Assembly (NCBI GenBank): GCA_965202585.1
Contig: OZ241826.1
Coordinates: 28,210,001 to 28,274,000, forward strand
From: Thalia democratica
Lineage: Eukaryota
Direction: 5' to 3'
Length of the DNA stretch: 64,000 nt
In this document: in pieces, positions 886 through 53,002 of the stretch
Position numbering within the stretch: position 1 is the stretch's first letter
How the letters are laid out: each line of letters opens with the position of its first letter
Translations under genes and position numbers: made by a program
The notes under the pieces: model-generated
What the model was told of the DNA's origin: nothing
Seen by the model: only the letters and a program-made list of their open reading frames with translations
Databases searched by the model: none

Positions 886-1201
886 GTGAGTATTTATTTT
901 CATTACCATAGTTAATATATCAATACAAAGCTTAATGTTTTCCATAAAACTTTTTTTTTTTAATTTAACCATTAAGCTTTTCATGTTCTATTTCTTGTTA
1001 TATTTAAATCTATTTCTTAGTGTCTTGATACGAACCAAGCAACGTCTTAAATAATAACAAAAATACATTTCACCATCTTTAAATTTTTAAACATACTCAA
1101 GTATATATAAATAAATTACTCTGAGTACTAAATACTTAGTTGCATCTTATATACTAACAAGTCTCACTTATTTATAAAACATTTTTTTTAACTTTCCACA
1201 G

Positions 1202-1233
1202 GTCATTGTCTGAATTTTCTATTCCAAAATTAA
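1202..1233 (+). CDS. Terminal coding exon of the homeobox gene
   Basis: Acceptor ttccacAG ends at 1201. Phase-1 continuation (G)HCLNFLFQN-TAA. A further donor (gttaga at 1260) and acceptor (tttacAG ending 1355) suggest a 3' UTR intron. Confidence 0.55.

Positions 1234-1966: not shown

Positions 1967-1970
<4 letters not shown>

Positions 1971-2011
<41 letters not shown>
1971..2011. repeat. (AT)n microsatellite
   Basis: About 20 perfect AT units. Confidence 0.95.
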
Positions 2012-2016
<5 letters not shown>

Positions 2017-15249: not shown

Positions 15250-17450
15250 ACAAATATTATTAACTCCTTAAACAAAAGTAGACAGACGAATAGCAAACAT
15301 GATTTATGATCCAGTAACCTACAAGGAATTGTTTATATGGTTATAGTGTGTTTTACGTCCACACAGGGTTTCCTCTTTTTTTACAAAACACGGTTGCCAC
15401 AGATCAAGCCGAGAAAAATTTCCTGACTTTTCTAACTCAAACTCTTAATCTAAACTTTTTCTAAAGTACATAGTCAAGCACTTGAAACTATATGAAGTTT
15501 TTAATCTAATTTTAATACAGGTTAAAACAAAGTTTTCTGTTTTGCTGAATTCAATGATCAAACTTCCATTAGATCACTTGAACCATTTGTGTATGAATAA
15601 TGTGTTTGCAATAAACTGACCTATCAGCAAAATATTGTTATTATTACCTTACAAACACAGCTTGTCTGAAATTAGAAACATTTTTTTATCATTTTTAACA
15701 TATATACTTAAGTAACAGTTAGAAAATACATTAAAAATCAGACTATTTATCTTTGTATGAAATATTTCCTCCTATCATTTAGCATAAAATCTGTAACAAA
15801 TAAATCTACTCTTGTTTGTATTTAAAATTAAGTTATTCTACAAAAATACAAATAAGTAATCTGAATAATGGCATATATCTCTCTTATAACTTAATTTAAA
15901 AATTTAAAAACTTAAAAAAATTATAAAGAGGTAAAGTATACACATTAAGTTGTTACATAAAATACTAAACTAACTGCTTATTTATAAACAGCTCAATTAT
16001 TTACTAGAAGAAAAAACACTTTGATTCTAATATTATGCTAAATTATCTTATATGTAAATATCACAGTTTGACTTTGGAAGTGTCCTTGCTACTGATCATC
16101 AATACTAATAAAGCTACAAAATCTGCTCGTTCAATATGTTTAAAGAAATTTTTTGCAACTATATTAAGGATATTTTGTTAGTTTATACCATATAAACACA
16201 ATGAAATCTGAAAAATTTTGATAATTACTAGCAAAATTTTGCAATTTTTTTCTGACTTCAAAGGCATTTTAATTAACTCTTTTACTATTTGAAGGATTTT
16301 TAAAATGAGGAATTTTGTAAATTTAAAAATCTGACTATTGTTTCATCTTTATCAATTTTCCTAACATTTCCTGACTTTTTTCAAAAACCCCAATTTTTCC
16401 TGACTTTTCCTTATTTCTTGACCTTGTAGCAACCCTGTCAAAAATTTTTCTAGTTTTTTAAAATTTCTTCCAAGTTTGTAAAGTACACATTTTTGGGTCT
16501 ATTTTTAGTTTAAAGTTAAGTTTAAGGTAAGAAACTGTGTTAAATAATATAAAAACACTAAAAATATACTATAAACCTACTTTAAATGTATTATTTATAA
16601 AAAAAATTCTTGATGATGACAAAAACTTTTTATCTATTTTATAGATTTTTTGAGTAAAATTTAATTTTTACTACTCATTAATGTTAAAATTGTTAAAATT
16701 ACAGATTTTTTTAGTGATTATTGTTCAAAAATACAGGTTTTTCTCAAAATATATCAAATTTTAGGTTTTATTTGCCTAAGGATTTACCAGGTTTCCAGGT
16801 AAAATGGCAACCCTGACCAATACCACAATAAATAGATAAAAACATTTAGGAAACTAAAAACTAAATTTAAAAATACTTAGTGCTACTGTATATAAAACTA
16901 GGCATGTCATGAGTAAACATATAAATACAAAGAACAGATACAAACACTAACAAATAAATAAAAATCAACAACTTTAGAATACAACTTTAGTTGGAATAAA
17001 AAAAAATTAAATTTTAATCAAATCTATATTTTATATGCTTTAAAATGTATAATTAATTTGAAAACTATTAACTGTAAATAAAAAAACAACAATCTAGAAA
17101 AAAATTACTTATAATAACAAAAAACACAAACTTCTACTTAAACAAAGTTTTGCAGCAGTAAGGGTGTCTAGAATGTTTTCCTCTACAACAATTGAGTATT
17201 AATATATGGCTATTGTATGCTAATGCAAACTTGCATCAGTAAAACACGTGACCTTGCAAGCTTTTTCTTAAACGCTTGAATGAACAAAAGCTTTAACTTA
17301 AAAACTTTTATTAATTTAATCAGTTATCAATTGCAATATTTTATAATGTTTCACTTCTATTCTATTTTTGCAAGAGAATCTTCACTCTACTTCTCCTCTG
17401 CTTTTAGTGGAAAAATAAACACTACCCTTCCTTTATAAACACAAGGCCTA
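15250..17450 (+). repeat. Segmental duplicate of ~34550-36760 (and of 63070->64000); its right part is also present inverted at ~23340-24560 and ~40540-41735
   Basis: Collinear shared anchors: taaatgacaaatatta, tatgatccagta, MITE A, MITE B, ggcatgtcatga and the conserved upstream block. Confidence 0.85.
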
Positions 17451-23242: not shown

Positions 23243-26200
23243 TAGGTAAACATTAAAGTAAACTTATGTTTTTAATGTTAAAAAATAATATTAGTATTAG
23301 ATTTTACCCCAAGTTCTATTTTCATATGTGTTACTTTTTTTCCTTCTTTATAAAGGAAGGGTAGTGTTATTTATTATTAGGGTTGTTTATTTTACAACAA
23401 AAAGGTAGAGGAAAAATAGAGTGAGGATTCTCTTCAAAAAGATGAAGAGGTAGTTGAACTGGAAATAAAATAATTTCATTTGATAACTATTTAAATTTGA
23501 AAACAGTTTTTAAGCTTGAGCTCTTTTTCTTCCAATCGTTTAAGTGAATGCTTGCAAGATCACGTATTTTACTGATGCAAGTTTGCATTTGCATACAATA
23601 GCCATATATTAATACTGTTTTATTGTAGAGGAAATCATTCTAGACACCCTATCTGCTGCTAAAACTTTGTTCAGTAAAAGTTTGTGTTTTTTATTCACAG
23701 TAATTTTTTTTTCTAAACAATAATGTTTTTTATATACAGTAAACGATTTATAATTTAATTATATATTTTAAAGTATAATCGATATAAATTTGATTTAAAT
23801 AAAACTTTTATATTCCAGTGAAAGTTATTTTCTAAAGTTTTTAATTTTTATAAATTTTTAAGTGTTTGTATCTGTTTTTTGTGAAAGATATGTTCATTTA
23901 TGACATGCCTAGTTTTATATACAGTAGCACTAAGTATTATTTAGTATAGCTTTTAGTTTCATAAATGTAATTATCTATTTATTGTGCTTAATAGCGTGGG
24001 TCTGGGTTGCTATTTATCTGTAAAACTGGTAAAACCTGGAATTTGACAATTTAGGCAAAAAAACCTGGAATTTGAGAAATTTTGAAAAAATCCTTGAATT
24101 TTAACAATATTTACTGAAAAAGCCTTGAATTTTAACAATTTTTATGTTACTAAGTAGTAAAATTTCGACTAGTCTCTAAAAATATATCAAATAAATAAAA
24201 AGGTTTTGTCATCATCAACATTTTCTTAAATTTATTTAATGTAGCTTTAAAGTTTACTTTCAATGTATTTTTATTATTTATCACAGTTTCTTACCTAAAA
24301 CTTAACTTTTAATAAAAAATAAACCTAAAATGTGTACTTTTAAAATCTTTGAAAAGTTTGGAAAACCTGGAAAAATTGCGACAGGGTTGCTACAACGTCA
24401 GGAAATAAAGAAAAGTCAGGGAAAAATAGGGGGTTTTAAAGAAAATTCTAGAAAAGTCCGGGATATTGAAAAATTTAAAAAAAAGTGTGATTTTTTTAGG
24501 TTAAATTTACAAAATTCCTAATTTTGTAAAGCCTTCAAGTGTTAATAAAAAAGTTAAAAATCCTTTAAAGTAAGATTAAAGTTTAAATTTTTTCCTAGAA
24601 ATTGACAATTTTTTTAGTTCTCATTACACTCATCAGGTATAAATTAATAAAATATCCTTTATCTAATTATCATTATATTATCATTAATATTGTTATTAAA
24701 TATCCTAAAATTGTTATTTTTACTTGTATTAAAATAACATTAAAAGCTTCATATTATTTCAAGTGATAGATTATGTATTTTAGAATAAGTTTGAATTAAG
24801 AGTATGATTTAAAAATTTATGAAATGTCAGGAAGAAATGGAGGTTTTGAAAAAAATGTCAAGAAATGTCAAGAGAACTGACAAAAATAAAAGAAAGTCAG
24901 AATTTATCATTATAAATTTACAAAATTCTTTATTTTACAAAGCCTTCAAATAGTAATACAATAATAAATAGTAATAGTGGATAACCTATACAAATAAACT
25001 GTGAGCTGAGATTACTGTTTAAGTAAACTTATAATAAACTAATATACTTTCAAAGTAAACATAAAAGTATGTACTTTTTTTTATATAACTTCAAATGTTT
25101 TCTGCTTCTTTTAAATAAATTTTTAGGCTTGAAAAATTATTTTTAAGCTAAGGATTTTTTTCTCGATAAATACATAGTATCTAGTGTTACATTATGTTAC
25201 TTTTATTTTTTAACTTACAAAAAATAAATTAAGTTTACTGACCAACTAATTTTTGAGCACTATGTCTTATAACCAAACATTTGAGCGCTTTTATTTGTCC
25301 TTCAAAAAATTTTGTATGAATAAATTAACTTTTTTAAATTTTTTTATGTTTATAATTTATAATAACTATATAGTAATATTTTTTATGTTATATAAAAATA
25401 TATAATAGTTAAATATAAGCTTGACTAAGTATTTCAATCAGTTTATTATGTAAAAAATTAAAATAAAAAAATTTAACTTTATTTACTAATAATACTAAAA
25501 ATCCTTCAGCTCACAACAATTTTACTTCTAACTCTTTAAAAAAAATTGTTAGCTGTTTTCCTAATATTTTCATGTTTGCTACAAATATTGTTTTTCTCAT
25601 TTTATAAATTAAATCTAACTTGCATTTTAAATTGTAATTTTCAAATATTTCACTGATTTTTTTTAAGGTATAGGATTAAACTGTATTTTAATTTTTATGT
25701 TGTTAGAAAAGGATTTCGGAACATCGTGAATAAATTTTTTTAAAGTAAACACATAACTGAACTAACTTTCTTTTCATTCATTTTATTAATTTTATTTTTT
25801 TTGATTTCAAAGTTTTGATAGTTTATAAAATATTAGTTTTTATTTACTCGCAAGAAATTTTAAAAGCATGTGGTCGGATAACAAAATTTATAAGTTTTTT
25901 TTATTTTTACTATTACTCTTACTACTAACCCTTACCCTTGATTGGTAACGTTGTTTTTTTATAAACAAATAATTATTATTTTTTTAATTAGTTTCATTTC
26001 TACCCCCGTGCAAAAATGACCTTTCGTGCAGAAGTGTCTTAGTGCAAAATTGTCCCATCGTGCATATTTGACCCGCTTCCCTTAGACCAAACATTTTAAA
26101 AGTAAATTTTTATCGATCAAAAAACATTATAAATATAAAAAAGCAATAAATATGTTTTGTACTCAAAGCATTGTCTATACATTAACTACTTACTTGGTTA

Positions 26201-27686
26201 GAAAAAATAAAGTATTTACATGAGTTAGATAGATTTAAATTTAAGTGTAAAAAGCAATCAAAGAATATTTGTACACAGTTCTTCTAGAACCCAAACTATT
26301 TACAGGAGTTTTAGAAATTTAAAATTATATTATACCTATCTGAGATAAATATTCATATATATTTATTTCTGTTAATACTGTGTATGCGTTTATATAACAT
26401 TACTTACAAATTACAAGAAAAAAAATAGAATGTTTTTAAAATTTAGAATTTATTACAGATTATTTAGTAAAAAAATCATGTACTCAAACGAAGAATGTTT
26501 AGATCAGACAATCTCACAGTTTCCTGGTCCTCAGAACTATTTGCGTCGCTTATGTGAAGAAGCAAAGCAAAAGACGAAAAGTGAAATCGAAAAAATTATC
26601 GAACGATTTGAAGCAAAAAAAGAAGAATTGGTGGAAGAAGCTGTCGATTTGTTTGATTGCGGATCATCGGCTTTAAAAAAAGCTCTTTCAAAGGATTACA
26701 AGAACGCGCTTCAACTGTTGGAAAGCGACGATCCGGATTACGATCTGTTGAAAGGATCTCTGGGTTTGAGCCAATTGAAAAAGTACTCAAATAAAAACGT
26801 CTCTCTCAGGATTTACAGGGTCAAATCGAATGTGGAACGTTGCAGATGTCCGAGCTTACTGCTTCTGCATGGCACCAAAGGGAGCAATGTTGAGGGAATC
26901 TTAAGAGAAGGACTGAGGCCTTCGTCGTCCGGCAAACATGGCCCTGGAATTTATTTGACAAACAGCTTTGAAATTGCTCACATTTTCGGTCAACAATATG
27001 CGAAAGACAATGGGATGGCCAAAGACTTGACATACTTGTTTATTAACAAAGTGAAACAAACGCTAGAAAGCTCAAGTGGTTTTTGTGGAGAGTGTAAAGA
27101 TGACCAGTTTATTACTCACAAACCGTTATTCTGTATGAAGACAACTTTAACTAAGTTTATAAACTCGTCGTTTCTCAATCTTGACTCAAGTTTGAGTTAC
27201 GAGCCCGTTTTAAAAGTTTTCTATGGAAATTCGCATTCCAACAAAGAAGTTAAGTTCGAAGACTCTTCAGCCCGAGAGTTTGACAGCGACGGAAGCAAAA
27301 TTCTTTCGGGCACTTTTCAAGTTGGTGATGACAAAAAAAAAATATTTGTGGCTCACCACGATCTAGTAACTCTCAAATACTTTATAGAAATCGAAATTAA
27401 ACAAAGTGCACGCGAGATTGCGAAATATATTTTGTACGATGAACTCTGCCAGTTTAAGTTTTCAATAGACCCGCAAACCTCAGATCCTCCAAAACACACG
27501 TTGATCGAAAACAGTCATGTCAGTTCTGAAGACTGCTTCATGAACACTTTTGTTGCTGAGCTCGAAAAAGAAATAAGCACCAATCAGCAGGCAGAAGTTG
27601 AACATGTAAAGCATTACTTTGAACGAAAAGTGAACTCTTTAATGCAACAACTGTTGTTTGAAACGAGCAGCATCTCGCAAACCAAC
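23243..27686 (+). repeat. Direct segmental duplicate of ~40432-44840 (upstream region plus PARP-like copy 2 versus copy 4)
   Basis: Continuous collinear similarity from ataggtaaac through the ATG to accaac. Confidence 0.92.
25998..26083. repeat. Four degenerate ~21-bp units (c)gtgcaaaantgNcc, also at ~43158-43235; probable MITE subterminal remnant
   Basis: ccgtgcaaaaatgacc, tcgtgcagaagtgtct, tagtgcaaaattgtcc, tcgtgcatatttgacc. Confidence 0.6.
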
Positions 27687-30059: not shown

Positions 30060-33000
30060 TCCAACTTGTATGAAACTAAAAACGTCAATTTTATAAATAT
30101 TTGCTACTAATTGAGAAATGTGCTACTAAAACTAAGCAGAACCAATTATATAAGAGATAATAAAGAAAAATTATATACTATTTTGTATATGTGCCGACTA
30201 GCGAGTTTCTATTTCTAAAGTTCAACAACATCGATAAAGTCATTTAAACCAACACTCCATTTAGAAACGTTTATTTTTTGAATACAGCCAGGAAAATAGC
30301 TTCAATGAAATTCGTCATTAGTATGAAACACTAAAACGCTTTATAAAGATTTTGTTAACTATTCTCTGTTATGTAACTTTTTTTTTATATATTGTATGTT
30401 TATTCTGAAAAATTTTAATAATTTAGAGATTAGTGAGAAAAACTTATATAGTTTTTCAGCTATCTGCCAACATTAAATAACAAATTCGCATGGCTTTAAA
30501 ACTACCATGTAAATATGTTGAAAATAATATAAAATAACCCTCGTTCAAAGACTTTAAAATAAGGTTTATATTTTCAAGTTTGAAACCTGAAGTCCTCAGA
30601 CAAATTAAATTCGTTTTTGAATTAGTTGAATTTGCACTTATTATATACATACATTATTACGTTAAATGTCACAGTTTTTTTTTTTGCATTCTCTTACTTA
30701 ATTTACGTTGTAATTTATCCATTGCATTTAAACGTGTCCTAATAAAAACAAATCCTAATCAACTTTTACTAATTTTAACCATAATTTATAAAGTTATGGA
30801 CGTGGACAAATAAAACTTTGAATATTTATTTGTGTTTAAAAAAGAGTTATTAAAACAGCAACAATTGCAAACATAAACATGCACTATAAGCAATAACGAG
30901 AGAGCACTGTTTAGGTACCATTTGCAAGCATAAAAAATACATTAGCTTATAGAAGTTAGTAACTAAAGAAAAACTAAAGTCTGTCTCACCGCACAAAAAG
31001 TCCAGGCGTAATCTCCGTAGACTTTGGCTAATGTTTTTGTTGATCGCCTCAACTATAGAAAGAAGCAGTGGAATTTTGTTTTGCTCAAATCTACTGAAAG
31101 CTAAAATCTGTCGAGTAGGCCGATTAGTGTAATATAAAACCTGTAAAAAATATCGAAAATTTGTGTATTGGACAGTAAAATAACTTTCCATCTTTCTTAA
31201 ACAAACCTGTGATTTTAATAAAATATTATGTTAGTTACTATTCTAAATAACTATTTGTTTAAAAAACTGTATAAAATAAAGTGTATAGGACTTTCAGTAA
31301 AATTAAAACAATAGTAACTTTTATGTGTTTAAACAGAAAGTTCTATTGTTTCAACTACAAAAAGATGGTTTATTCAAAGTCTATTGAACGCTAAAAACAA
31401 CTAAATAAGCTGGAATCACGCCGATCAGCTGCAGCCAGGTTCTTTTGTTGCTTTGAAAACAGCACCCTCTGGTGTCGGAGTTTGGTAAAACTTCATCGTC
31501 CGCGCTTATTCCTTTGCATGCGACAAAGACGAACGACAACTTTCCGACTTGTCCGTTCGTGACACAGTGGCTCATTCCTTGCAAAAGTTCTATGTCCAAG
31601 CTGGTGGACGCGAAGCAGTCACAATTGAATCTGCACTCGCACTGCTCCAAAAAATCCTTGTCGTTCGCCGGGTACCCTCTCGTCAGAACGTTCACCACCT
31701 CGTTCGCCTTGACTCCTTGCAGGTAAAGTAAGCCTCCGCGTATCTGTTCGCCTTCGTCGACTGGGTTGATCTTGAAAACTTTCAGGATTGCCGAGTTCGG
31801 GCTCATTTTGGTCATCGACCCGAGCACAAACTGGTGATCTGGATCTGAAGTTTGCAGCAGCTCCGCTTTGTACTTGGCGCAACCGTTGGTTTCCGATATG
31901 CTGCTCGTATCGAACAACAGTTGCTGCATAAAAGAGTTCACTTTGCGTTCAAACTGATGCTTTGTATATTCTACTTCTGCCTGCTGATTGGCGCTTATTT
32001 CTTTTTCGAGCTCGGCAACAAAAGTGTTCATGGAGCAGTCTTCAGAACAGACAGGACTGTTTTCGATCGACACGTCTTTTCGCGGATCTGAAGTTGGCAG
32101 ATATTTTGAAAACTTGGTCTCGTTGAGATCGACATACAAAATTTGGTTTGCAAGCTCGCGTGCACCTTGTTTTGTTTCGATTTCTATCAAGTATTCGAGG
32201 GTTATTAGGTCATGATGAGCCACAAATATTCTTTTTTCGTCATCGCCTACTTGAAACGTGCCCGAAAGAATTTTGTTTTCGTCGCTGTCGAACTTGTGGG
32301 CTGAAGAGTTTCTGAATTCAACTTGTTTGTAGGAATATGAGTTTACATCGAAAACCTTTAAAACGGGCTCGTAACTAAAGCTGGAGTCAAGACACGGGTA
32401 TGAAGATTTAATAAACAAAGTTGAAGTTGTCTTCTTATCAAATAATGGTTCACAAGTTTTAACGGACTGACCGTCTTTACGTTCTCCACAAAGACAACCT
32501 GAACCTACTAGCGTCTCTTTCACTTTGCTAACAAACAAGTACGTCAAGTCTTTGGCGTTCCCATCGTTTTTCGCGTAGTTTTGACCGTAACGTTGAGCAA
32601 TTTCAAAGCTGTTTGTCAAATAAATGCCAGGGCCATGTTTACCTGACGACGAAGGTCTCAGTCCTTCTCTTAAGATTCCCTCGACGTTTTTTACTTTGGT
32701 GCCGTGCAGAAGCAGCGAACTCGGACATCTGCAACGTTCCATATTCGATTTGACCCTGTAAATCCTGATATTAACGTTTTTGTATTTTTTTGATTGGTTT
32801 GTTTCAGCGCTCAAACCAAGCGATCCTTTCAACAGATCGTTATCCGGATCGTCGCTTTCCAACAACTGAAGCTTGTGCTTGGAATCCTTTGAAAGTGATT
32901 TTTTAAAAGCAAAAGTGTTGCATATAAACAACTCCATAGCATCTTCCACCAATTCTTCTTTTTCCGCTTCAAAATATTTGACCTTGTTTTCAATTTTAGT

Positions 33001-35480
33001 TTTAGTCTTTTGCTTTTCTTCTTCGCACAGACGGCGCAAGTAGTTCTGAGGACCAGGAAACAGTGCGATTGTCTGATCTAAATACTTTTCGTTTGAGTAC
33101 ATGATGTATTTACTGTATAATATGTAAAAAAAGTCTAAATGTAAAAAAACAACTTTTTTTTTCTTAAATTGAATAATTAAAATTATTTAAATGTAGTCAA
33201 AGTAATTTAAATTAAAGTATATTGGTTTTTCTCAGATTTCTTAACCAAGTAAGTAGTTAATATTCAGAAAATGCTATTCATGCATACTTGATTTCTGTAT
33301 ATTTTTTTAATGAACAATAAAAAAAGGCTCAAAAGGTTTGATTTAAGGAGTTAATGTGATAAAAAGCCTTTCGGCTACCTAGTCGTACACCATATGCTTT
33401 TACAACTTTTTCTGAGCAATAAATGTTAATGTTTTTTAACTTAAATATATAAACCTTGATAAATATAACAATAAATATAATAAATAAATAAAATGAAAGG
33501 AAATTTAAGTTAGTAATGCTTTTACTTAAAATATTTTTACTTACGATGTACTCAAAAACGTATCTAGCAACATAAAACTTAAGTACAGTTTAAGCTTAAA
33601 CCTCAAAAAAAAATAGTAGAAATTTTTTTTAACATTACAGTTTAAATATTAACCTAAAATAGATTGATAAAACGAATTAAACTATATTTATAGCAACCAT
33701 GGAAATAATTAGAAAAGTGCTCACAACTTTTTTATAAAAGTAAAATCGTAATAAACTTAAAGTTTTTAGGTTAAGTATTATTAGTTTTTTTTGCTAGAAA
33801 CTACCTTCCTTTTATATTTGACAATTAGATTAAAACCCTTAAAATAGTTACTATTTGTTTTGACCTGGACAAGACGTTTAAAGGTATCCGTGGAGTGCGA
33901 TTCGAAAACCGAAAGGTTTTTTGATGCCTAAGACCAAAAATATTGACCGGTTTTATTTGTTGTTTAACATATATATTTGAACAAAAAAAATATTATATAA
34001 CTTTTTAAAGAAATTAATTCCACTATATATATAAAATTTAGTGTATGTCAAATAAAAGCGCTCAAAATGTTTGGTCCTAAGACCTGGTGCACAAATAACT
34101 AATTGGTTTATAAACTCAACTTAACTTTTGTAGACTAAAAAATAAAAATAAATACTGTAGCATCAGACACTATGCATTTAAGGAGAAAATAAAAATCGTT
34201 CGGTTAAAAATTATTTTTAATTCAAAAATGTATTTGAAAGAAGTAGAAAATATTTAAAGACATATAAAGAAAATGTATATACTTTTATGTTTCCTAAGAA
34301 TAAAGATTAACTTATTATAAATTTACTTTAATAGTAATCTCAGCTCACAATTTATCTGTATATTTAATTCACTGTTAGAAGGTACATCTATAATTTAGTA
34401 ACCTCTATCACAAAGTTTTTAAATGGATATACTGGAAAAATAAATAAAAGTTTATTAATATTCTGAAGTTATTTTAAAGTAGTATTTCTAAACAATTATG
34501 CAAAAAAACCAAATAGAAATGCTGCAACTAAAACTTAACTACTGTTATTTTAACAATTTTAAATGACAAATATTAACAACTCCTTAAACAAAAGTAATTA
34601 GACGATGAGCAATGATCAGTTATGATCCAGTAGCCTACAAGGAGTTATGTATGGTTATAGTGTGTTATAGGGTTGCCACAGATCAAGCTGAGAAAAATTT
34701 CCTGACTTTTCCTGACTTTTCTTAATTAAATCTTAATTTAAACGTATTCTAAAATACATATTTTAAATGTTCAACCTATAAGAAGTTTTAAATCTATTTT
34801 TTTTACTGGATAAAACATTTTTTTTTTTTTTGACCAATTCAATCATCAAACTTCCTTTACATGACTTGAACCATCTGTGTATGATCGATGTGTTCGAATA
34901 AACAGCTCTATCACCAATATACTTGTGTTATTGTCTTAAAAACACAGCATGTCTGAAAAAAGACACAATCTTTTTAGCTTTTTATAACATATATAGTTAA
35001 GTAACAGTAAGTAAATAAATAAAAATTTAAACTATACATCTGTTGTTTAAAATGTTTTCTCATATGATTAAGCATAATATATTTTAGAAATAAATCAATT
35101 TTTTTTTAACATTAATAACTTAAGTTATTCTACAAAAAATACAAAAAAGTAAACTGAATCATGGCACATACCTCTCTTATAACTTATTTTACAAACTGAA
35201 ACAACATAAAGAAAAAACATAAAGAGCTAAAGCATATACATTAAGTTATCACATAAAATACTAACCTAACTGCTTACTTATAAAAAACTCAACTATTTAC
35301 TTGAAAAAAAAACACTTTGATTCTAAAATCATGCTAGATTTACTTTTGTTTATATATCAAAGTTTCACTTTAAAAGTGTTCTTTGCTACAGATCATCAAT
35401 ATTAAAAAGCTTAAAAAAACTGTTTGTTCAATTTGTAAGCAAAAATGCAAATTTAAAAGAAGTTTTTGCAATTTTATAAA
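30060..35480 (+). repeat. Direct segmental duplicate of ~58430->64000 (copy 3 versus copy 5 with flanks)
   Basis: Very high identity by eye from the gene through 33103-35480 versus 61619-64000, and lower identity with indels in the downstream flank. Confidence 0.95.
31381..33102 (-). CDS. PARP/ARTD-like paralog copy 3, intact, 573 aa (coiled coil - ART domain - coiled coil - pseudo-ART domain)
   Basis: Uninterrupted single-exon ORF with LLLHGT (CAC at 32704-32706), GKHGPGIYLTNSFEIAQRYG, RIFVAHHDLITLEYLIEI and the C-terminal VIPAYLVVF strand. Confidence 0.92.
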   Translation of the reverse strand: MYSNEKYLDQTIALFPGPQNYLRRLCEEEKQKTKTKIENKVKYFEAEKEELVEDAMELFICNTFAFKKSLSKDSKHKLQLLESDDPDNDLLKGSLGLSAETNQSKKYKNVNIRIYRVKSNMERCRCPSSLLLHGTKVKNVEGILREGLRPSSSGKHGPGIYLTNSFEIAQRYGQNYAKNDGNAKDLTYLFVSKVKETLVGSGCLCGERKDGQSVKTCEPLFDKKTTSTLFIKSSYPCLDSSFSYEPVLKVFDVNSYSYKQVEFRNSSAHKFDSDENKILSGTFQVGDDEKRIFVAHHDLITLEYLIEIETKQGARELANQILYVDLNETKFSKYLPTSDPRKDVSIENSPVCSEDCSMNTFVAELEKEISANQQAEVEYTKHQFERKVNSFMQQLLFDTSSISETNGCAKYKAELLQTSDPDHQFVLGSMTKMSPNSAILKVFKINPVDEGEQIRGGLLYLQGVKANEVVNVLTRGYPANDKDFLEQCECRFNCDCFASTSLDIELLQGMSHCVTNGQVGKLSFVFVACKGISADDEVLPNSDTRGCCFQSNKRTWLQLIGVIPAYLVVFSVQ

Positions 35481-38400
35481 GGATATTTTATTTATTTATA
35501 CCAGTAGAGGACAATGAAAAATAAATAGTTTTGTTAATTGCTAGAAAAATGTTGCAAGTTTTTTCTGAATTTAAATGAATTTTAATTAATTTTTTACCAC
35601 TTGAAGGCTTTGTAAAATGAAAATTTTGTAAACTTAGCCTGCCAAATCTGACATTTTTTTATTGTTGTTAATTTTCATGATATTTCCTGACTTTTTTCAA
35701 GACCCCCAATTTTTCCTAATTTACTGACCTTATAGCATACCTGTCAAAAGCTTTTCCAGGTTTTCCAAATTTTTACCAATTTTGTAAAAGTAAACATTTT
35801 TGGGTCTATGATTAGTTTAAAGTTAAGTTTAAGGTAAGAAACTGTTTTAAGTAATATAAAAACATTGAAAATATACTGTTAAGCTACTTTAAATGTATTT
35901 CTAAATACAAACAAACTCTTGATGATGATAAAACGTTTTTATCTATTTGATAAGTTTTTTGGGTCAAATTGAAACTTTGCTACTCAGTTATGATAAAATT
36001 GTAAAAAGTCAAGGTATTTTCAGTGATTATTGTTCAAAGTTCCAGGGTTTTTTCAAAATTTCTTAAATTCAAGGTTTTTTTTGTCTATATTTTCAAATTC
36101 TAGGTTTTACAAGGTTTCCAGGTAAAACAGCAACCCTGACTTACACCATTAACCACAGTTTATTGAAAATATCATTAATAAAACTAAAACCTATGTTAAA
36201 AAATACTTTGGGATACTCTTTATAAAATTAGGCATGTCATGAATGAACAAACTGTATACAAGAACAGAAACAAAGACTTACAAATAAGTACAAAATTTAA
36301 CAACTTTAGAAAAAAACTTTAACTGGAATAGAAAAAATGTAACTAATCAAATCATAAGGAATATATTTGAAAGTGTATATATTAAGTTGAAAACTATTTA
36401 ATGTATACATAAAACATCAATATTTAATAAACTTTGAATAACTAAAAACACAAATTTTTATTTAAACAAATTTTGCAACAGTAAGGGTGTCTATAATGAT
36501 CTCCTCTACAACAAATGAATATTAAAATATGACTATTGTATGCTAATGCAAACTTGCATCAGTGAAACACGTGACCTTGCAAGCTTTCTCTTAAACGCTT
36601 GGATGAACAAGAGCTTTAACTTAAAAATTTTATTAAATTTACACTGTTATCAAATGCAGTTTTATATCCTGTTCCACATCCTCTTCTACTTTTGGAAGAA
36701 AATCTTCAATCTACTTCTTCTCTGCCTTTTTGTTAAAAATTATGCATTACTCTTCCTTTAAAAAAAAAACATATCAAAATATAACTTGGTCTCAAAACTG
36801 ATACTAATGCTATTCAAAAATTCTTTATGTATACTAAATTTAAAAATCAACTAATCTTTAATTCTGAGAAGTTTTTAATTTATAATAATAGTAAAAATTT
36901 ATTGTGTCTTAATAAGAAAAACTCATCGTCTCACTTAAACTTTTCATTTTACTTTTAAAAATAATATCAAATAGTTGTTACAACCTATTATAAAGGTTGC
37001 GGCATTTGAAACGGATAAGTCTAAAAAATACAAAAAAACACTTAAATGTCGTGATAATCCCTTTAATAGTGACTTACTAGAAATTTCTAAATATCTCAGG
37101 GTGTTACTGGTCTTTTCTGTCTTATTAACTTATAAATATTATCGTTTTTATTATGCTATTAAGATTTAAGTACCTTACATAATTTAATATGACTCACTTT
37201 ACCTTAAAATTGATCACCATTTTTTTGTGATTACTTGTAAATTATAAATTGTCGATACTCGTGTTAATTGAATAGACCTTATCTTTGTGAGTTTTATTTT
37301 AACTCTTTTTTTTGCATGTTCTATAGTGACTTATGGTATCAAGTTATTTCAGTTCTTTTTTTTGCTCTGTTGACTAAAAATTTGTCAGTTCTTTTTTAGC
37401 TCTGTTGACTTAAAACTTATTAATTCTATTTTATCTTTAAATGCTTAAAACTTGTCACCAACTTTAGGTTATTTACTAGGACTAAAACTCTGTTAACACC
37501 ATTTCAACTTTATTTTATCCCTATAGTACTTTTATTAATATAACTTTTTACTGTATGTTGATTTAACAACCATCTATTGTTTCGGTTACGGTCAAATTTT
37601 AAATGCTTTTAAAAACATGAAAAGGTAAATGTAAGTATTGCTTTTTAAACAAAAGATGTAAAATTTACAGTGAAATTTATCTTAATTAGGTTTTCCCGAA
37701 CTTTTGTCAAAATGCCCACTTTTTAGAAATTAAAAAAAATATGGCTACTTCTATTAAGGTTTCTTAAAAAGTTATTATTAAAAATACCTCAGACTTTTTT
37801 TTATTATCATCTATAGTATCTAGCGTAGATTTCAAATCATTTTTGTTTTTTTCACTATAATAGAGTTGCCGGCAACTCTTCAAATTATAAAAAATTGTAT
37901 TTTGTCCAACCTTTTTTTTAATGTTATTTCTAAAAAATTTTTATAGTTCGAAAAAAATCAATAAAAGCTAGGTTTTTTAACAAAGTTATTTATAAAACAA
38001 CAAAGCATTGAAATTAAATCATGTAAATATCATTTAAAAGAGCATAATATAAAAGCATAGAACTTTGCAATTCTTGGTTTATAAAAAGCTAACATTTCGG
38101 CAGCTTTGTGAATGCTGCTTAGTTTTTTACCTTTAGATGACTTGTATTCGAAATAAAATTTTAGCTCAGCTTATTTTTTTTAGCGCAAAATAATTTAAGT
38201 TATACTTTTTTTTAAAACAAATTTGTATATGTTTTACTTCAAGTTATTATTTCTAATTAGATTTTTTCTAAAGTTTTTTTTGTCCCTAGTTTAATGTCCC
38301 TGCTACTTATTTTTTATGGTTTCTGATTTGTTAACTGCACTGAGCTTGTCTTAGTATCATAATTTAAAAATTCAAACACAAGGCCTACAGTGAAGGTTAA

Positions 38401-41400
38401 CACTAAATTTACTGTAAAAATGGTTTTTACAACTAACTAAAAATAATCATAAATGTTTACATAGGTATTCAAAAATAGAGTTAAACTTAGGATAGCATTT
38501 TTACAAAGTCTGACTCAATATAGTTTGTTTAATCAGTTTAGTTTTTAGTTTCTATTAAGTCTCAGGAAAAATCTTTCACTAGATTTTGAATTATATTAAG
38601 TTAATTTGGTTTAAATATTTTTTTTCCTTAACAGCCAATTTTGTTGATGAACAACATTTTTAGAAAAAAAAAACAATATTTAAGGTTTGAACAAATTCAG
38701 GAGAGATTTTGGTTACTTTAGACATGACAATAAGCTGTAGAATGATTAAAATGTATTTACAAACATTAGTTTTTAAAATCTGGTATCTAAAGTTGTTTTG
38801 TTCTTACAGAGAGCCCATGCAACATGAATTTTTTTTTTCAATTTCTGAAAATTTTATTGACATAAAATAAAGACAAAATAAAATAATAAATTTAAGCTTA
38901 AATACATTGAAATAAACTGACAGTAAAAAGCAAAAAATAAGTGGACTTGATTTAATTTTTGTATAATAGACAGAGTGGCCACTTTACCTGGAAACCTGAA
39001 GAAACCTGGAATTTGAGAAATTTTGCAAAAAAATCTGGAAAAACAGAAGTTTAAACAAAAAACACTAAAAAACCTTGAGTTTTTACAGTTTTAACATGTT
39101 CAGTAGTATAATTTCGATTTGACTCAAAAAATATATCATATAGAATAAAAGTTGTGGTCATCATTAGTAATTTTTATAAAATAAAAACACATTTAAAGTG
39201 GTTTTACAGTATCTTTTTAATGTTTTTATACTATTAAATACAGTTTCTTACATTAAAACTAGCTTTAAACTAAAAATAGACCCAAAAGGTGTACTTTTAA
39301 AAATTTTGAAAAAATTTGGAAAACTGTAAAAAGATTTGCAAAAAACGAGTGTCAACCTAAATAAACTAAAAAAACATGCAATTTATTTTCTTTCTGTTAC
39401 CTTACCTAAATTTATCTCGAAATATTATGATGAAAATAGTATAAAGATTTATCTATTCAATTTTTAATGTCAAAAACCATCTTCAAGATCAAAAACCATC
39501 TTCAAGAATTCAACAATCGTACTTTAAAGGATTTTAAACTATTTTATTACCACTTGAAGACTTTAAAAAATTAGGAATTTTGTAAATTTAAACTGACAAA
39601 ATCAGACTTTTTTTTTATTTTTTTAATATACGGACTTTTCCAGAATTTTCTTCAAAACCTCCTATTTTTCCTTGGCTTTTCTTTATTTCCTGACGTTGTA
39701 GCAACCCTGTCGCAACTTTTCAAATTTTTCCAAACTTTTTCCCAGATTTTTAAAGTACACATTTTTGGGTTTATATTTTGTTTAAAGTTAAGTTTAAGGT
39801 AAGAAACTGTGTTAAATAATAAAAATACATTGAAAAGAAACTTTAAAGCTACAGTAAATATATTTCAAAAAATCTTGATGATGACAAAACCTTTTTATCT
39901 ATTTGATATATTTTTAGAGACAAATCGAAATTTTACCACTTAGTAACATAAAAATTGTTAAAATTCAAGGCTTTTTCAGTAGATATTGTTAAAATTCAAG
40001 TTTTTTTTAAAATTTCTAAAATTCCAGGTTTTTTTTGCCTACATTGTCAAATTCCAGGTTTACAAGGTTTCCAGGTAAAATGGCAACCCAGACCCACGCT
40101 ATTAACCACAATAAATAGATAATTACATTTGTGAAACTAAAAGCTATACTAAATAATACTAAGTGCTACTGTATATAAAACTAGGCATGTCATAAATGAA
40201 CATATCTTTCACAAAAAACAGATACAAACACTTAAAAATTTATAAAAATAAAAACTTTAGATCATTATGATCTAAAGTTCTAGTATAAAGATTTATCTAT
40301 TCAATTTTTAATGTCAAAAACTATCTTCAAGAATTTCTCGTTTACTTTTAACTTAAAAAAAATGGTTATTTATCTTATATAACAGGCCACTCAACACTAT
40401 AACTAAATGTTTTAAATCTCGTTGAAAACCCATAGGTAAACAGTATAGTAAACTTAAGTTTTTAATGATAAAAAAAAATTTAGTATTAGATTTTACTCCA
40501 AGTTAATTTATTATACGTGTTACTTTTTTTCCTCCTTTATAATGGCAGGGTTGTGTTTATTTTCCAACAAAAAGGAATAGGAAAAGTAGAGTAAGGATTC
40601 TCTTCAAAAAAAATGAAGAGGAAGTTAAACTGGAAATAAAATTTCATTTGATAACTGTTTAAATTTAAAAACAGTTTTTAAGCTGGAGCTCTTGTTCTTC
40701 CAAGTGTTTAAGTAAATGCTTGCAAGATCACGTGTTTTACTGATGCAAGTTTGCATTTGCATACAATAGCCATATATTAATACTGTTTTATTGTATAGGA
40801 AATCATTCTAGACACCCTAACTGCTGCTAAAACTTTGTTCAGTAAAAGTTTGTGTTTTTTTATTCAGAGTATTTTTTTTCTAAACAATATTGTTTTTTAT
40901 ATTCAGTAAACGATTTATAATTCAATTATTCATTTTAAAGTATAATCCTTATAAATTTGTTTTAAATAAAATTTCTATATTCCAGTGAAAGTTATGATCT
41001 AAAGTTTTTATTTTTATAAATTGTTAAGTGTTTTACTGTTTTTTGTGAAAGATATGTTCATTTATGACATGCCTAGTTTTATATACAGTAGCACTAAGTA
41101 TTATTTAGTATAGCTTTTAGTTTTATAAATGTAATTATCTATTTATTGTGGTTAATGGTGTGGGTCTAGGTTGCCATTTTGCTGTAAAACTGGTAAAACC
41201 TGGAATTTGACAATTTAGGCAAAAAAAACCAGGAATTTTGGAAATTTTGAAAAAAACATGAATTTTAACAATAATTACTGAAAAAGCCTTGAGTTTTAAC
41301 AATTTTTATGTTACTAAGTGGTAAAATTTCGATTTGTCTCTAAAAATATATCAAATAGATAAAAAGGTTTTATCATCATCAAGTTTTTTTAAATATTTTT

Positions 41401-43630
41401 ACTGTAGCTTTAAAGTTTATTTTCAATGTATTTTTATTATTTAACACAGTTTCTTACCTTAAACTTAACTTTAAAAAAAAAAAACCCAAAATGTGTACTT
41501 TTAAAATCTTGGAAAATTTTGGAAAACCTGGAAAAATCGCGACAGGGTTGCTACAACGTCAGGAAATAAAGGAAAGTCAGGGAAAAATAGGGGGTTTTGA
41601 AGAAAATTCTGGAAAAGTCCGGAGTATTGAAAAAATTTTTTAAAAGTCTGATTTTGTCAGTTTAAATTTACAAAATTCCAAATTTTTTAAAGCCTTCAAG
41701 TGGTAATAAAATAGTTAAAAATCCTTTAAAGTAAGATTTAAGTTTCAAATTTTTCCTAGAAATTGACAAATTTTTTTAGTTCTCATTACACTCATCAGGT
41801 ATAAATTAATAAAATATCCTTTATCTAATTATCATTATATTATAATTAATATTGTTATGAAATATCCTAAAATTGTTATTTTTACCTGTATTAAAAAAAC
41901 ATTAAAAGCTTCATATTATTTCAAGTGTTAGATTATGTATTTTAGAATAAGTTTGAATTAAGAGAATCATTTAGAAAAGTCATGAAATGTCAGGAAGAAA
42001 TGGAGGTTTTGAAAAAATGTCAAGAAATGTCAAAAAAATTGACAAAAATAAAAGAAAGTCAGAATTTATTATTATAAATTTACAAAATTCTTTACTTTAC
42101 AAATCCTTCAAATAGTAATACAACAATAAATAGTAATAGTGAATTAACTATACAAATAAACTGTGAGCTGAGATTACTGTTTAAGTAAACTTATAATAAA
42201 TAATATAGTTTTAAAGTAAACATAAAAGTATGTACTTTTTTTACATAACTTCAAATATTTTCTGCTTCTTTTAAATAATTTTTTAGGCTTAAATGTAATT
42301 TTAAGCTAAGGATTTTTTTACTCGATAAATGCGTAGTGTCTAGTGTTACATTATGTTATTTTTGTTTTATAACTTACAACAAATAAATTAAGTTTACTGA
42401 ACAAATAATTTTTTGTGCATCATATCTTTGAACCAAACATTTTGAGCGTTTTTATTTGTATTTCAAAAAATTTTGTATGATTGTATTAACTTTTTTAAAT
42501 TTTTTTATGTTATATAATACTATATAAATTTTTTTTATGTTATTTAAAAATATATAATAGTTAAATATAAACTTGACTAAGTATTTCAATCAAAATATTA
42601 TGTGAAAAATAAAAATTAAAAAATTTAACACTATATACTAATAATACTTAAAATCCTTCAGCTCACAACAATTTTACTTTTAACTCATTAAAAAACATTG
42701 TGAGCTGTTTTCCTAATGTTTTCATGTTTGCTACAAATATTGTTTTTCTCGTTTTATGAATTAAATCTAACTTGCATTTTAAATTGTAATTTTCAAATAT
42801 TTTCCACTGAATTTTTTTTAAGGTATAGGATTAAACTGTATTTTAATTTTTATGTTGTTAGAAAAGGTTTTCGGAACATCGTGAATAATATTTTTAAAGT
42901 AAACAGAAAACTATACTAACTTTCTTTTCATTCATTTTATTAGTTGTTTTATTTTTTTGATTTCAAAGTTCTAGTTTATACAATAATAGGTTTTATTTAC
43001 TCGTAAGAAATTTTAAAAGCATGTGGTCGGATAACAAAAGTTACAAGTTTTTTTAGTTTTATTATCACTCTTACTACTAACCCTTACCCTTGATTGGTAA
43101 CGTTGTTTTTTTTATAAAAAAATAATTATTATTTTTTTAATTAGTTTCATTTCTACTTCCGTGCAAAAATTACTTTTCGTACAGAAGTGTCTTAGTGCAA
43201 AATTGTCCCATCGTGCATATTTGACCCGTTTCCCCTTAGATCAAACACTTAATGTAATTTTTTATCATTTTAAAAACATTATATAAATATAAAAGCAATA
43301 AGTAAGTTTAGTATTAAAAGCATTGTCTGTACATTAACTAATTACTTGGTTAGAAAAAATGAACTATTTACATGAGTTAGATAGATTTACATTTAAGTGT
43401 AAAAAGCAGTCAAAGAATATTTATACACAGTTCTTCTAGAACCCAAACTATTTATAGTGGTTTTAGAAGTTTAAAATTATTTTATACCTATCTGAGATAA
43501 GTATTTATATATATATTTATTTTTGTTATTACTGTGTATTCGTTTATATAACATTACTTACATATAACAAGAAAAAATTAGAAAGTTTTTTAAAATTAGA
43601 ATTTATTACAGATTATTTAGTAAAAACATC

Positions 43631-45346
43631 ATGTACTCAAACGAAGAATGTTTAGATAAGACAATCTCGCAGTTTCCTGGTCCTCAGAACTATTTGCGCC
43701 GTCTGTGCGAAAAAGAAAAGCAAATGACAAATTTTAAAATCGAAGAAATGGTTAAATATTTTGAAACGGAAAAAGAAGAATTGGTGGAAGCAGCTGTCGA
43801 TTTGTTTGAATGCGGATCTTCGGCTTTAAAAAAAGCTCTTTCAAAGGATTCCAAGCACGAGCTTTAACTGTTAGAAAGCGACGATCCGGATTACGATCTG
43901 TTGAAAGCATCTCTCGGTTTGAGTCAATTGAAAAAGTACTCAAATGAAAACGTCGCTCTTAGGATTTACAGGGTCAAATCAAATGTTGAACGTTGCGGAT
44001 GTCCGAGCTTGCTGCTTCTGCATGGCACCAAAGGGAACAACGTCGAGGGAATCTTGAGAGAAGGACTGAGGCCTTCGTCGTCCGGCAAACATGGCCCCGG
44101 CATTTATTTGACAAACAGCTTTGAAATTGCTCACAATTACGGTCAAAACTACGTGGAAGACGATGGGATCGTAAAAGATTTGACGTACTTGTTTGTTAGC
44201 AAAGTGAAAGAGACGCTTGAAAGTTCAAGTTGTCTTTGCGGAGAGTGTAAAGAAGATCAGTATATTACTCACAAATCGTTATTCGGTAAGAAGACAACTT
44301 CAACTAAGTTTATAAACTCGTCGTTTCTCAATCTTGACTCCAGTTTGAGTTACGAGCCCGTTTTAAAAGTTTTTGATGGAAATTTGCATTCCAACAAACA
44401 AGTTCAATTGGAAGACTTTCAAGCCCGAGAGTTTGACAACGACGGAAGCAGAATTCTTTCGGGCACTTTTCAAGTAAGTGAAGTCGATAAAAAAATATTT
44501 GTGGCTCACCACGATCTAGTAACTCTCGAATACTTTATAGAAATCGAAGTAAAACAAAGTGCACGCAAGCTTGCGAAACATATTTTGTACGACGAACTCT
44601 GCCAGTTCAAGTTTTCAATAGACCCGCAAATTTCAGATCTGCCAAAAGACACGTTGATCGAAAACAGTCATGTCAGTTCTGAAGACTGCTCCATGAACAC
44701 TTTTGTTGCTGAGCTCGAAAAAGAAATAAGCGCCAATAAGCAGGCAGAAGTAGAATATACAAAGCATCAGTTTGAACGCAAAGTGAACTCATTCATGCAG
44801 CAACTGTTGTTCGATACGAGCAGCATATTGGAAACCAACGGTTGCGCCAAGTACAAATCGGTGCTGCTGCAAGCTTCAGATCCAGATCACCAGTTTGTGC
44901 TCGGGTCGATTAACGGAATGAGCCCGAACGCGGCAATCCAGAAAATTTTCAGGATCAACCCAGTCGACAAAAGCAAAAAGATGCACGGAGGCTTGCTCTA
45001 CCTGCGGGGAGTCAAATCCCACGACGTGCCAAAAGTTCTGGCAAGAGGCTACCAGGCAAGCGACGAGGATGTGTTCGAACAATGCGAATGTGGACCCAGC
45101 TGCTATTCTAGCTACGCATCCGACGTCTTGAAATGTGAACTTTTACTTGGGTTAAGCCACTGCGTCACGAACAGACAGGTCGAAAAGCTGTCGTTTGTCT
45201 TAGTGGTTAGGGATGGAAAACGCGCAGACAATGTAGCTTTTCTCAACTCTGACACTAGAGGGTGCTGTTTTAAAACCGGGTTGCAAATAATACATCAGCC
45301 GATTGGCCTTATTCCGGCTTATTTAGTTGTTTTTAGCGTTCAATAG
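43631..45346 (+). pseudogene. PARP/ARTD-like paralog copy 4 with a single in-frame nonsense codon (TAA 43865-43867, CAA in copy 2)
   Basis: ORFs 43631-43867 and 43901-45346 are in the same frame. The sequence reads ctt TAA ctg versus ctt caa ctg in copy 2. The remaining ~490 codons are open and include both domains. Confidence 0.85.
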
Positions 45347-51926: not shown

Positions 51927-52012
51927 AGGTTAATGTTTAAACGTAAACACTTTCAACTGAGCCCACTTGAAGGGCTTTTAAATAATTTATTCAAATGGCG
52001 ATTTTAAAAATT

Positions 52013-52069
52013 CTGGAACATATGTTTCACAAAGCTTTAATTTTTCATAAAGCTTTGATCATCAGCCAG
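52013..52069 (-). ncRNA. Minimal type I hammerhead ribozyme motif (minus-strand arm)
   Basis: Reverse complement of the 52946-53002 motif. Confidence 0.75.
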
Positions 52070-52248
52070 TTAAATTCAAAATACAAAGCACTGTACTAAA
52101 CAAAGATACAAAAGTTATGCAAAAAAACAAAAAACAGTATGACGTAATATTGTACATTACAAATATTCAGTACAAAAATCGATCTACCTTCTAACTAATT
52201 AAACAACTAAAATTAACGAAAACAACAGTTAATTGACTATAAAATGCT

Positions 52249-52599
52249 TCAAAATTTGTAGTGTTTTAAAAGAAGCTTTTTTATATGTCGACAAGACGAT
52301 ATAAATTCGCTTCGCTTATTTAAACAACCTTCCTTTTTTAACGCATACATAACGGCTGTTGATTCTTTTAAGCACAGCCTACAAACAGGGTTGTTACCAT
52401 CTGCTATTGGCTGTGCTCTTTTTATCACCTCCCAAGTTAATTTAAAATCAATGTTTTTGCGCTTAAGGCCGCAAACATACTTCGAAAGCTCAGTTTCATT
52501 TTCGTATACACCACCTTTAAAGGATTTTTTATGGTTGGCATACCGAAATCTGAATTGAGTGGAGCATAGGCCGATGTAGAACTTCTTTTCAAGGTCAGA
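52249..52599 (-). CDS. Open C-terminal fragment (116 aa, no start codon) of a Penelope-type GIY-YIG endonuclease
   Basis: SDLEKKFYIGLCSTQFRFRYANHKKSF...ETELSKYV...W...CRLCLKE...LNKRSEFISSCRH, containing YIG, RYxNH, TELS, CxLCLxE and LNKRSE..SxCRH. Confidence 0.88.
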   Translation of the reverse strand, partial: SDLEKKFYIGLCSTQFRFRYANHKKSFKGGVYENETELSKYVCGLKRKNIDFKLTWEVIKRAQPIADGNNPVCRLCLKESTAVMYALKKEGCLNKRSEFISSCRHIKKLLLKHYKF

Positions 52600-52945
52600 G
52601 TTAACTGACCTTGAAAGTTAACTGACCTGTTTGTAAGCTGTGCTTAAAAGAATCAACAGCCGTTATGTATGCGTTAAAAAAGGAAGGTTGTTTAAATAAG
52701 CGAAGCGAATTTATATCGTCTTGTCGACATATAAAAAAGCTTTTTTAAAAACACAACAAATTTTGAAGCATTTTATAGTCAATTAACTGTTGTTTTCGTT
52801 AATTTTAGTTGTTTAATTAGTTAGAAGGTAGATCGATTTTTGTACTGAATATTTGTAATGTACAATATTACGTCATACTGTTTTTTGTTTATTTGCATAA
52901 CTTTTGTATCTTTGTTTAGTACAGTGCTTTGTATTTTGAACTTAA

Positions 52946-53002
52946 CTGGCTGATGATCAAAGCTTTATGAAAAATTAAAGCTTTGTGAAACATATGTTCC
53001 AG
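52946..53002 (+). ncRNA. Minimal type I hammerhead ribozyme motif
   Basis: ctgg (stem I) - CTGATGA - t caaagcttta [tgaaaaat] taaagctttg t (10-bp stem II) - GAAA - c atat g (palindromic short stem III) - t t (GUU cleavage triplet) - ccag (stem I'). Confidence 0.78.

Follow-up and report, generated by a model that had tools for sequence, protein, structure and literature searches.

The Gig2 (grass carp reovirus-induced gene 2) family of fish, amphibians and other non-amniote vertebrates has expanded in a lineage-specific manner and has members with two and four tandem PARP-like units. It includes antiviral and interferon-induced members (PMC3617106). Another kind of tandem is known in C2I, iota-Ia and VIP2. 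Each of these components of bacterial binary toxins contains a pair of ADP-ribosyltransferase (ART) domains that arose by duplication; one of them is active, and the other is unable to bind nicotinamide adenine dinucleotide (NAD+) and now serves as an adaptor (PMC6628389). The current work deals with a gene of Thalia democratica, designated c3, that lies in a stretch of 64,000 nucleotides of contig OZ241826.1 (assembly GCA_965202585.1, positions 28,210,001 to 28,274,000 of the forward strand). We call this whole stretch “the window”, and all coordinates below are counted from its first nucleotide. The c3 gene (31381-33102, minus strand) is an intact, uninterrupted and intron-free open reading frame of 573 amino acids with an ATG start and a TAG stop. 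According to the list of open reading frames, Pfam and AlphaFold2 (AF2) models, its product consists of a helix and a PARP-like ART, a linker, a second helix and a pseudo-ART. We found that the module of helix and ART is duplicated within one chain. The principle of tandem ARTs, or of an active ART joined to a degenerate one, is not new, since Gig2 and the C2I, iota-Ia and VIP2 proteins have already been described. The tandem arrangement as found here was seen in no named protein family; the overall uniqueness claimed for it in an initial annotation, which was made from the sequence alone, was overstated.

The duplication is detectable within c3 itself: BLASTP of residues 1-330 against residues 331-573 gives an E-value of 3e-6 with 21% identity over 164 amino acids. 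We also compared the profiles of the N-terminal (N) and C-terminal (C) modules of 38 family members by hhalign and obtained a probability of 99.4 and an E-value of 6.5e-22 over 205 columns. The aligned region starts at the helix, continues through KYKxELL..DxDY and the strands with HGT and Tyr, and ends with the terminal PAYLxVF strand. Long helix 19-57 of the N module is paired with helix 358-396 of the C module, and the KYKxELL..DxDY element and a DSxG motif are present in both modules. The His strand, LLHGT in the family consensus of the N module, corresponds to LYLxGVK in the C module, the GPGIY of the Tyr strand corresponds to an aromatic residue followed by A-S-T, and the terminal strand PAYLIEIE corresponds to PAYLVVF. 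The initial annotation had matched the two halves motif by motif, and its motif pairs are correct because the hhalign alignment covers all of those elements.

The family was collected with a word-indexed search, which returned 15 proteins, and then with phmmer, which yielded 220 cluster representatives with E≤1e-3, 49 of them with E≤1e-30. All counts out of 38 given below refer to an alignment of 38 near-full-length members. An assembly or gene-fusion artefact was considered and rejected: the two-module layout recurs in at least 38 independent members.

The N ART comprises residues 73-312 (32167-32886, minus strand). It is matched by the Pfam PARP family (PF00644) with 30.5 bits, above the gathering threshold of 26.7, and the N domains of 36 of the 38 members are matched as well (best E-value 2e-13). 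In a search of the N profile against the PDB, the best structures are PARP3 (3.7e-7) and PARP1 (5e-7), followed by PARP4, PARP15 and PARP14. In this alignment, the KYKxELL..DxDY element is the equivalent of the first strand and the first helix in canonical PARP catalytic domains. The AF2 model of full-length c3 has a mean local confidence (pLDDT) of 80.6 and a predicted template modelling score (pTM) of 0.73, with residues 198-243 and 335-351 unstructured. The former segment is a low-confidence insert in the N ART that contains Cys. Foldseek matches this model to PARP3, PARP1, PARP2 and PARP4 at E-values of about 1e-7 with probability 1.0, and the structural matches in AFDB and Atlas span c3 residues from about 65 to 312 (75-312 in AFDB). 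Thus the predicted fold of the N domain is that of an ART.

The C ART (residues 406-573; 31384-31887, minus strand) is cryptic. Pfam PF00644 matches only two of the 38 C modules at E<1 (best E-value 0.0077) and does not match the C domain of c3, and the C profile reaches only PARP3 in the PDB, at an E-value of 0.17. When the C module was modelled alone, AF2 gave a pTM of 0.86 and a pLDDT of 90.5. The best 50 Foldseek matches of this model are all PARP catalytic domains (E-values from 2e-6 to 7e-5, probability 1.0), with PARP4, PARP1, PARP3, PARP14, ZAP, PARP12, PARP15 and PARP16 among them. VIA-align gives Z-scores of 12-13 over module residues 55-221, and its top matches among solved structures are again PARP catalytic domains. 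On these models, the C domain is an ART fold homologous to the PARP-type N module. The initial annotation expected structure prediction to return two ARTD folds and depended, among other things, on an ART fold of the C-terminal ~170 amino acids. The models predict that fold, with the pLDDT and the Foldseek probability just given, and both halves match PARP catalytic domains. Since Pfam does not detect the second domain, the number of such tandem ARTs in annotated genomes is probably underestimated.

A likeness to Gig2 emerged from the weaker phmmer matches, which carry two to four Pfam PARP stretches; a follow-up search with one of them identified them as Gig2 proteins from fishes, amphibians, sharks and lampreys. 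Among the named matches of the N profile, Gig2 units score best, with 44-51 bits per unit; human PARPs score lower, PARP3 with 33 bits. Like the present family, Gig2 proteins are stand-alone PARP-like proteins without accessory domains that form lineage-specific expansions, some of them with tandem units. However, Gig2 units are only ~145 amino acids long and lack both the helix and the KYKxELL..DxDY element. They are also near-identical repeats, each of which keeps the HGT, Y and acidic motifs, unlike the two halves of c3. The match between the N profile and Gig2 is limited to the NAD+-binding core of ~75 residues (profile positions ~133-210), and the C profile has no significant match to Gig2. 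For these two reasons the family is not Gig2. Multi-unit Gig2-like proteins are annotated in lampreys (P0153, P0227), in sharks and rays (P0110, P0220, P0255, P0268) and in the coelacanth (P0237). Since such tandems occur in lampreys, cartilaginous fishes and the coelacanth, the tandem design is old within vertebrates.

Among the binary toxins of clostridia and Bacillus, the enzymatic components C2I, iota Ia, CDTa and VIP2 resemble c3 in having two ART halves that arose by duplication, one of which is degenerate. These secreted proteins are members of the R-S-ExE clade with their degenerate half at the N-terminus, whereas c3 belongs to the H-Y (PARP/diphtheria) clade, has its degenerate half at the C-terminus and shows nothing suggesting secretion. 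The R-S-ExE motifs were looked for in the c3 domains and are absent; the domains have H-Y motifs, and their best matches are all PARP-clade structures. We therefore treat the likeness to the binary toxins as an analogy, not as homology of architecture. A literature search for other proteins with two PARP catalytic domains found nothing. Two side observations may be added. Uncharacterised proteins of 420-600 amino acids among the AlphaFold-DB cluster matches (ranks 3, 4, 11, 23, 25 and 28) align over both ARTs with low TM (template modelling) scores and are possibly additional tandem-ART proteins, from other eukaryotes. Another weak match, P0144, is a protein of 735 amino acids with four ubiquitin repeats and two PARP stretches, an unusual ubiquitin-PARP fusion.

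Both c3 domains share the fold of the mono-ART PARPs (PARP10, PARP12, PARP14, PARP15) and of PARP1-4. Unlike those proteins, c3 is without macro, WWE, zinc-finger, WGR and helical regulatory domains. The initial annotation had found no accessory domain and an architecture unlike PARP1-16, tankyrase or ZAP. This agrees with our results: Pfam returns PARP only for c3 and for the family, and no canonical PARP matches the architecture. In particular, neither the PF02877 helical regulatory domain nor WGR, both of them features of the DNA-dependent PARPs (PARP1-3 type), is matched at E<0.01 in any of the 38 members. A remnant of the PARP1-type helical regulatory domain before the ART was rejected as a candidate, as Pfam gives no PF02877 match. 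Each ART is preceded by one long helix only, and a few VIA alignments reach into it. In the N module it belongs to a helical region of residues 5-57 (32932-33090, minus strand; the long helix itself is 19-57), which was delineated by DSSP on the AF2 model and is paired by hhalign with the helix of the C module. Its counterpart, at residues 358-396 (31915-32031, minus strand), was found in the AF2 models and by hhalign. One long predicted helix per module is the sole support for the term “coiled coil” that had been applied to these regions.

The catalytic positions of the N domain are partly kept. His133 is found in 36 of the 38 members, Tyr161 in all 38, and a second Tyr, Tyr172, in 33. The position equated with PARP1 Glu988 by spacing and predicted strands is occupied by Arg291 in c3; across the family it is Lys in 17 members, Arg in seven, and N, S, I, L, H, M, D or V elsewhere. 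There is no conserved acidic residue within positions 289-296 across the 38 members, and His296 is found in 37 of them. Thus the H-Y-E triad is incomplete: His and Tyr are kept, and the Glu position is basic or variable. The combination of His and Tyr with a non-acidic third residue is that of the H-Y-I/L mono-ARTs, from which the family differs in its basic third residue and in having two ARTs in one chain. With His-Tyr(-Tyr) kept and Glu absent, the N domain is predicted to bind NAD+ and to be at most a mono-ADP-ribosyltransferase. Its earlier description as “active-type” needs to be qualified: the lack of the catalytic Glu (K/R291) leaves it at best of the mono-ART type.

The C domain has lost more. 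The His position is Gln in both intact copies of the gene in the window (Q462 in c3) and Arg in two disrupted copies, c1 and c4, and the Tyr position in c3 is Phe497. In the family as a whole, 15 of the 38 C domains have the His, 11 have the Tyr and seven have both. The second ART had been described as degenerate, which is supported but does not apply uniformly to the family. Other features are conserved, namely Asp543 (36/38), Gly463, Gly476 and Pro564-x-Tyr566-Leu567. It follows from these counts that the NAD+-binding residues were lost repeatedly within the family while other features were kept. In the position of the donor loop (D-loop), c3 has a cluster of four Cys (C488, C490, C494 and C496; 31615-31641, minus strand). 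At least four Cys are present there in 18 of the 38 members, and at most one in the other 20. The four-Cys loop is a candidate zinc knuckle that might bind zinc. The pseudo-PARPs PARP9, ZAP/PARP13 and TASOR likewise have lost NAD+-binding residues and retain the ART fold under selection as a partner or scaffold. However, they work in trans or as parts of large multi-domain proteins, whereas the pseudo-ART of c3 is fused behind its own paralogous and apparently competent ART.

The origin of the tandem can be approached through stand-alone proteins of 220-300 amino acids from marine metagenomes that consist of a single module of helix and ART (P0125, P0128, P0133, P0147, P0142, P0122 and P0154, on contigs such as L010). 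They match both profiles: the N profile end to end with 85-128 bits and the C profile over the whole ART part with 34-48 bits. Two of them have the canonical PEY motif (H-Y-E), and others have CH instead of the AH motif. A search for named relatives of these proteins returned metagenome sequences only. We regard the stand-alone mini-PARPs as likely single-module ancestors of the tandem family. We built a maximum-likelihood tree from 37 N, 38 C and seven single modules. In it, all C modules form one clade (SH-aLRT support 99) and the single modules lie on one branch (92). The clade of C modules implies one ancient duplication. The N-N and C-C distances of the same proteins are correlated (r 0.80), divergence is higher by a factor of 1.24 among the C modules than among the N modules, and the distance to the single modules is 5.0 substitutions per site for C modules and 3.75 for N modules. 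This pattern indicates one old duplication followed by co-divergence of the N and C modules, with an acceleration of the C copy.

We estimated the ratio of non-synonymous to synonymous substitution rates (dN/dS) by the Nei-Gojobori method among the local copies and a metagenome relative, L001. It is 0.3-0.65 for the whole gene, 0.26-0.35 for the N-ART core (bootstrap 95% confidence interval at most 0.57) and 0.40-0.69 for the C-ART core (at most 5% of bootstraps reach 1). The fastest-evolving part of c3 is the inter-module linker (residues 313-357; 32032-32166, minus strand), which is partly disordered (pLDDT <50 at 335-351) and has dN/dS of 0.4-2.3. The dN/dS values and the conservation across members at 25-40% identity agree that the pseudo-ART evolves faster than the N ART and is under weaker but real constraint.

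The gene belongs to a large multigene family without introns, whose members outside this genome all come from AT-rich marine-plankton metagenome contigs, mostly from Tara Oceans. The flanks of these contigs have a G+C content of 20-25%, similar to that of the window, where intergenic DNA has ~24% and the c3 gene 43%. Members at 30-40% mutual identity co-occur in one metagenome sample. No family member bears a name in NCBI or UniProt, and a protein-atlas feature search for named relatives gave only ART-toxin-like leads, all sub-threshold with scores <0.9.

The window contains five paralogues, of which c3 and c5 are intact and c1, c2 and c4 are broken. The c5 gene (59894-61618, minus strand) encodes 574 amino acids and is 96% identical to c3. 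Both lie inside a segmental duplication of 4.5 kb with 96% identity, in which 30969-35488 matches 59479-64000. In c1 (8139-9811, minus strand), which was delineated by tblastn in two frames and by translation, the N domain is intact; a frame change near residues 527-530, with ~35 residues missing, disrupts the C domain. The c2 copy (26478-27686, plus strand) ends after residue ~406 and hence has no pseudo-ART; the cut-off point is the exact end of a 4.4-kb duplication common to c2 and c4. The c4 copy (43631-45346, plus strand) can be read over its full length in one frame, apart from a single in-frame stop at codon 79. The local expansion with pseudogenisation proposed in the initial annotation is thus confirmed by five copies, three of them disrupted. 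The mosaicism that it also proposed is found only in the form of a segmental duplication with a truncated copy. Its broader view of a lineage-restricted family that expands and decays locally with raised dN/dS is borne out by the range, the array and the substitution rates.

Taken together, we consider it fairly probable that c3 represents a family of tandem mini-PARPs in which an NAD+-binding N domain, a mono-ART if active, is coupled to a C-terminal pseudo-enzyme partner, and which may have a role in conflict or defence. The ancestor would have been a stand-alone mini-PARP of ~230-260 amino acids that became a tandem through a single ancient internal duplication. The N domain would bind NAD+ and, without Glu, would transfer single ADP-ribose units in the manner of PARP10, PARP14 and PARP15, if it is active at all. 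Judging by analogy, the C domain is most likely a pseudo-enzyme partner of the N domain, and it would serve as a built-in regulatory or target-recognition partner. Precedents for the pairing of a pseudo-enzyme with an enzyme are the degenerate ART half of the binary toxin enzymes and, reportedly, PARP9/DTX3L with PARP14. The family would diversify by local duplication and loss, like defence or conflict genes. A role in genetic conflict or innate defence would agree with the birth and death of copies in the array and with the raised dN/dS, and PARPs are said to evolve fast in host-virus conflict. The sequences show the duplication, the states of the residues, the pattern of selection and the array with its pseudogenes, and the models show both folds as predictions. 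NAD+ binding, mono-ART activity, substrates, zinc binding, domain packing, expression, the partner role of the C domain and the immune role are inferred.

Several observations weigh against this reading. Three of them concern the N domain. The register of its third catalytic position was deduced from spacing and predicted strands, not from a residue-level superposition; we know of no characterised active PARP with a basic residue at the position of the catalytic Glu; and an invariant Ala replaces the Ser through which PARP1 contacts nicotinamide. Two concern the C domain: the label “pseudo-enzyme” may fail for the family as a whole, as some members keep His and Tyr there, and the confidence intervals of the C-ART dN/dS touch 1 in both comparisons between intact copies. 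Finally, the only sequencing runs that contain c3 are of unknown type, and the four examined also cover intergenic DNA. They therefore behave as DNA and are uninformative on expression.

The missing Glu, with K/R291 variable across the family, and the invariant Ala are also what one would see if both domains were catalytically dead and the protein were a scaffold, or a reader of NAD+, ADP-ribose or a partner, like TASOR or ZAP/PARP13. TASOR is a documented pseudo-PARP, and the fold matches of the C module include the inactive domain of ZAP. However, the His and each of the two Tyr residues in the N domain are retained by 33-38 of the 38 members at 25-40% identity, which is unexpected if NAD+ binding is dispensable. 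Moreover, many active mono-ARTs likewise lack the Glu (PARP7, PARP10-12, PARP14-16). For these reasons we hold the loss of activity in both domains to be unlikely.

Less plausible still is a modification of nucleic acids or phosphate groups by the N domain, comparable to that by Tpt1/KptA or to the activity of PARP10, PARP11, PARP15 and TRPT1 on RNA ends, with residue 291 and His296 binding phosphate. The basic residues at position 291 (K/R in 24/38) and the near-invariant His296 would suit this role, and there are weak matches to Tpt1 around the HGT motif, with E-values of 0.075 for the single sequence and 0.003 for the profile. However, these matches cover ~30-50 residues of the shared HGT core without the N-terminal RNA lobe of Tpt1, the best sequence and fold matches are PARP1, PARP3, PARP4, PARP14 and PARP15, and position 291 is not invariant. 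Membership of c3 in the Tpt1/KptA family itself was rejected on the same matches (E-values 0.003-0.075).

That the array is merely decaying functionless DNA, made of retro-copied or transposon-borne reading frames that drift to pseudogenes, is hardly credible: three of five local copies are broken, the genes are intron-free and lie amid dispersed repeats and segmental duplications, and the runs that contain c3 give no RNA evidence, but both the N domain and the helices have dN/dS values clearly below 1, dozens of intact full-length members at 25-40% identity share the two-module layout and motifs, and both a conserved upstream block and a probable poly(A) signal accompany the gene.

Within the tandem mini-PARP explanation, a more specific version can be formulated, to which we attach little confidence. 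The family might be a defence system of the tunicate lineage that parallels Gig2 and the interferon-induced PARPs, with the pseudo-ART as a sensor or decoy. In that case a competent mini-PARP would be fused to its degenerate twin, in which a zinc-knuckle-like loop replaces the donor loop. The pseudo-ART might gate mono-ADP-ribosylation of viral or nucleic-acid targets by the N domain, or it might absorb pathogen factors that target PARP folds. Such a protein would constitute an intramolecular pair of enzyme and decoy in the H-Y clade. This lineage is not known to have an interferon system.

If the tandem mini-PARP explanation is true, the family would be a large branch of the PARP superfamily that has so far gone unannotated in the vertebrates' sister group, with an enzyme and a pseudo-enzyme in one chain. 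It would also be a natural experiment on the decay of ARTs into regulatory modules, in which His and Tyr were lost repeatedly and independently and other surfaces stayed conserved. Finally, it would be a possible invertebrate-chordate counterpart of the antiviral Gig2 and PARP9/14 systems.

The flanks of c3 carry putative expression signals. An AATAAA six nucleotides past the stop codon (31369-31374, minus strand), noted on reading the sequence, is a probable polyadenylation signal. Before the ATG there is a conserved block (33113-33160, minus strand) that contains a polypyrimidine tract and, 13-22 nucleotides before the start codon, acceptor-like AG sites. The alignment shows that this block, about 50 nucleotides long, is common to all five copies and to one metagenome relative. 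Acceptor-like polypyrimidine/AG sites are also found 20-34 nucleotides 5' of the ATG in distant family members; over the five copies and L001, L002, L004, L005 and L010 the distance is 13-34 nucleotides. This suggests that the block is a candidate acceptor site of an intron in the 5' untranslated region or of spliced-leader trans-splicing.

Repeats are abundant in the window. A dispersed repeat family of 1-2 kb with 77-80% identity lies in both orientations between the PARP-like genes (15392-17439, 34671-36764, 40536-41824, 23379-24668 and 63187-63948). It is probably a transposable element and may have mediated rearrangements. The summed depth of the sequencing runs over c3 is 5-10 times that of its flanks, a difference that many near copies in the genome could explain. 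Two segments that adjoin c3, 33732-34099 and 34652-35000, are very high-copy repeats: their summed contig depth in three genome-like runs is ~70,000-365,000, versus ~500-8,000 nearby. The window also contains an inverted repeat of 408 bp with 98.5% identity (51982-52389 and 52626-53033).

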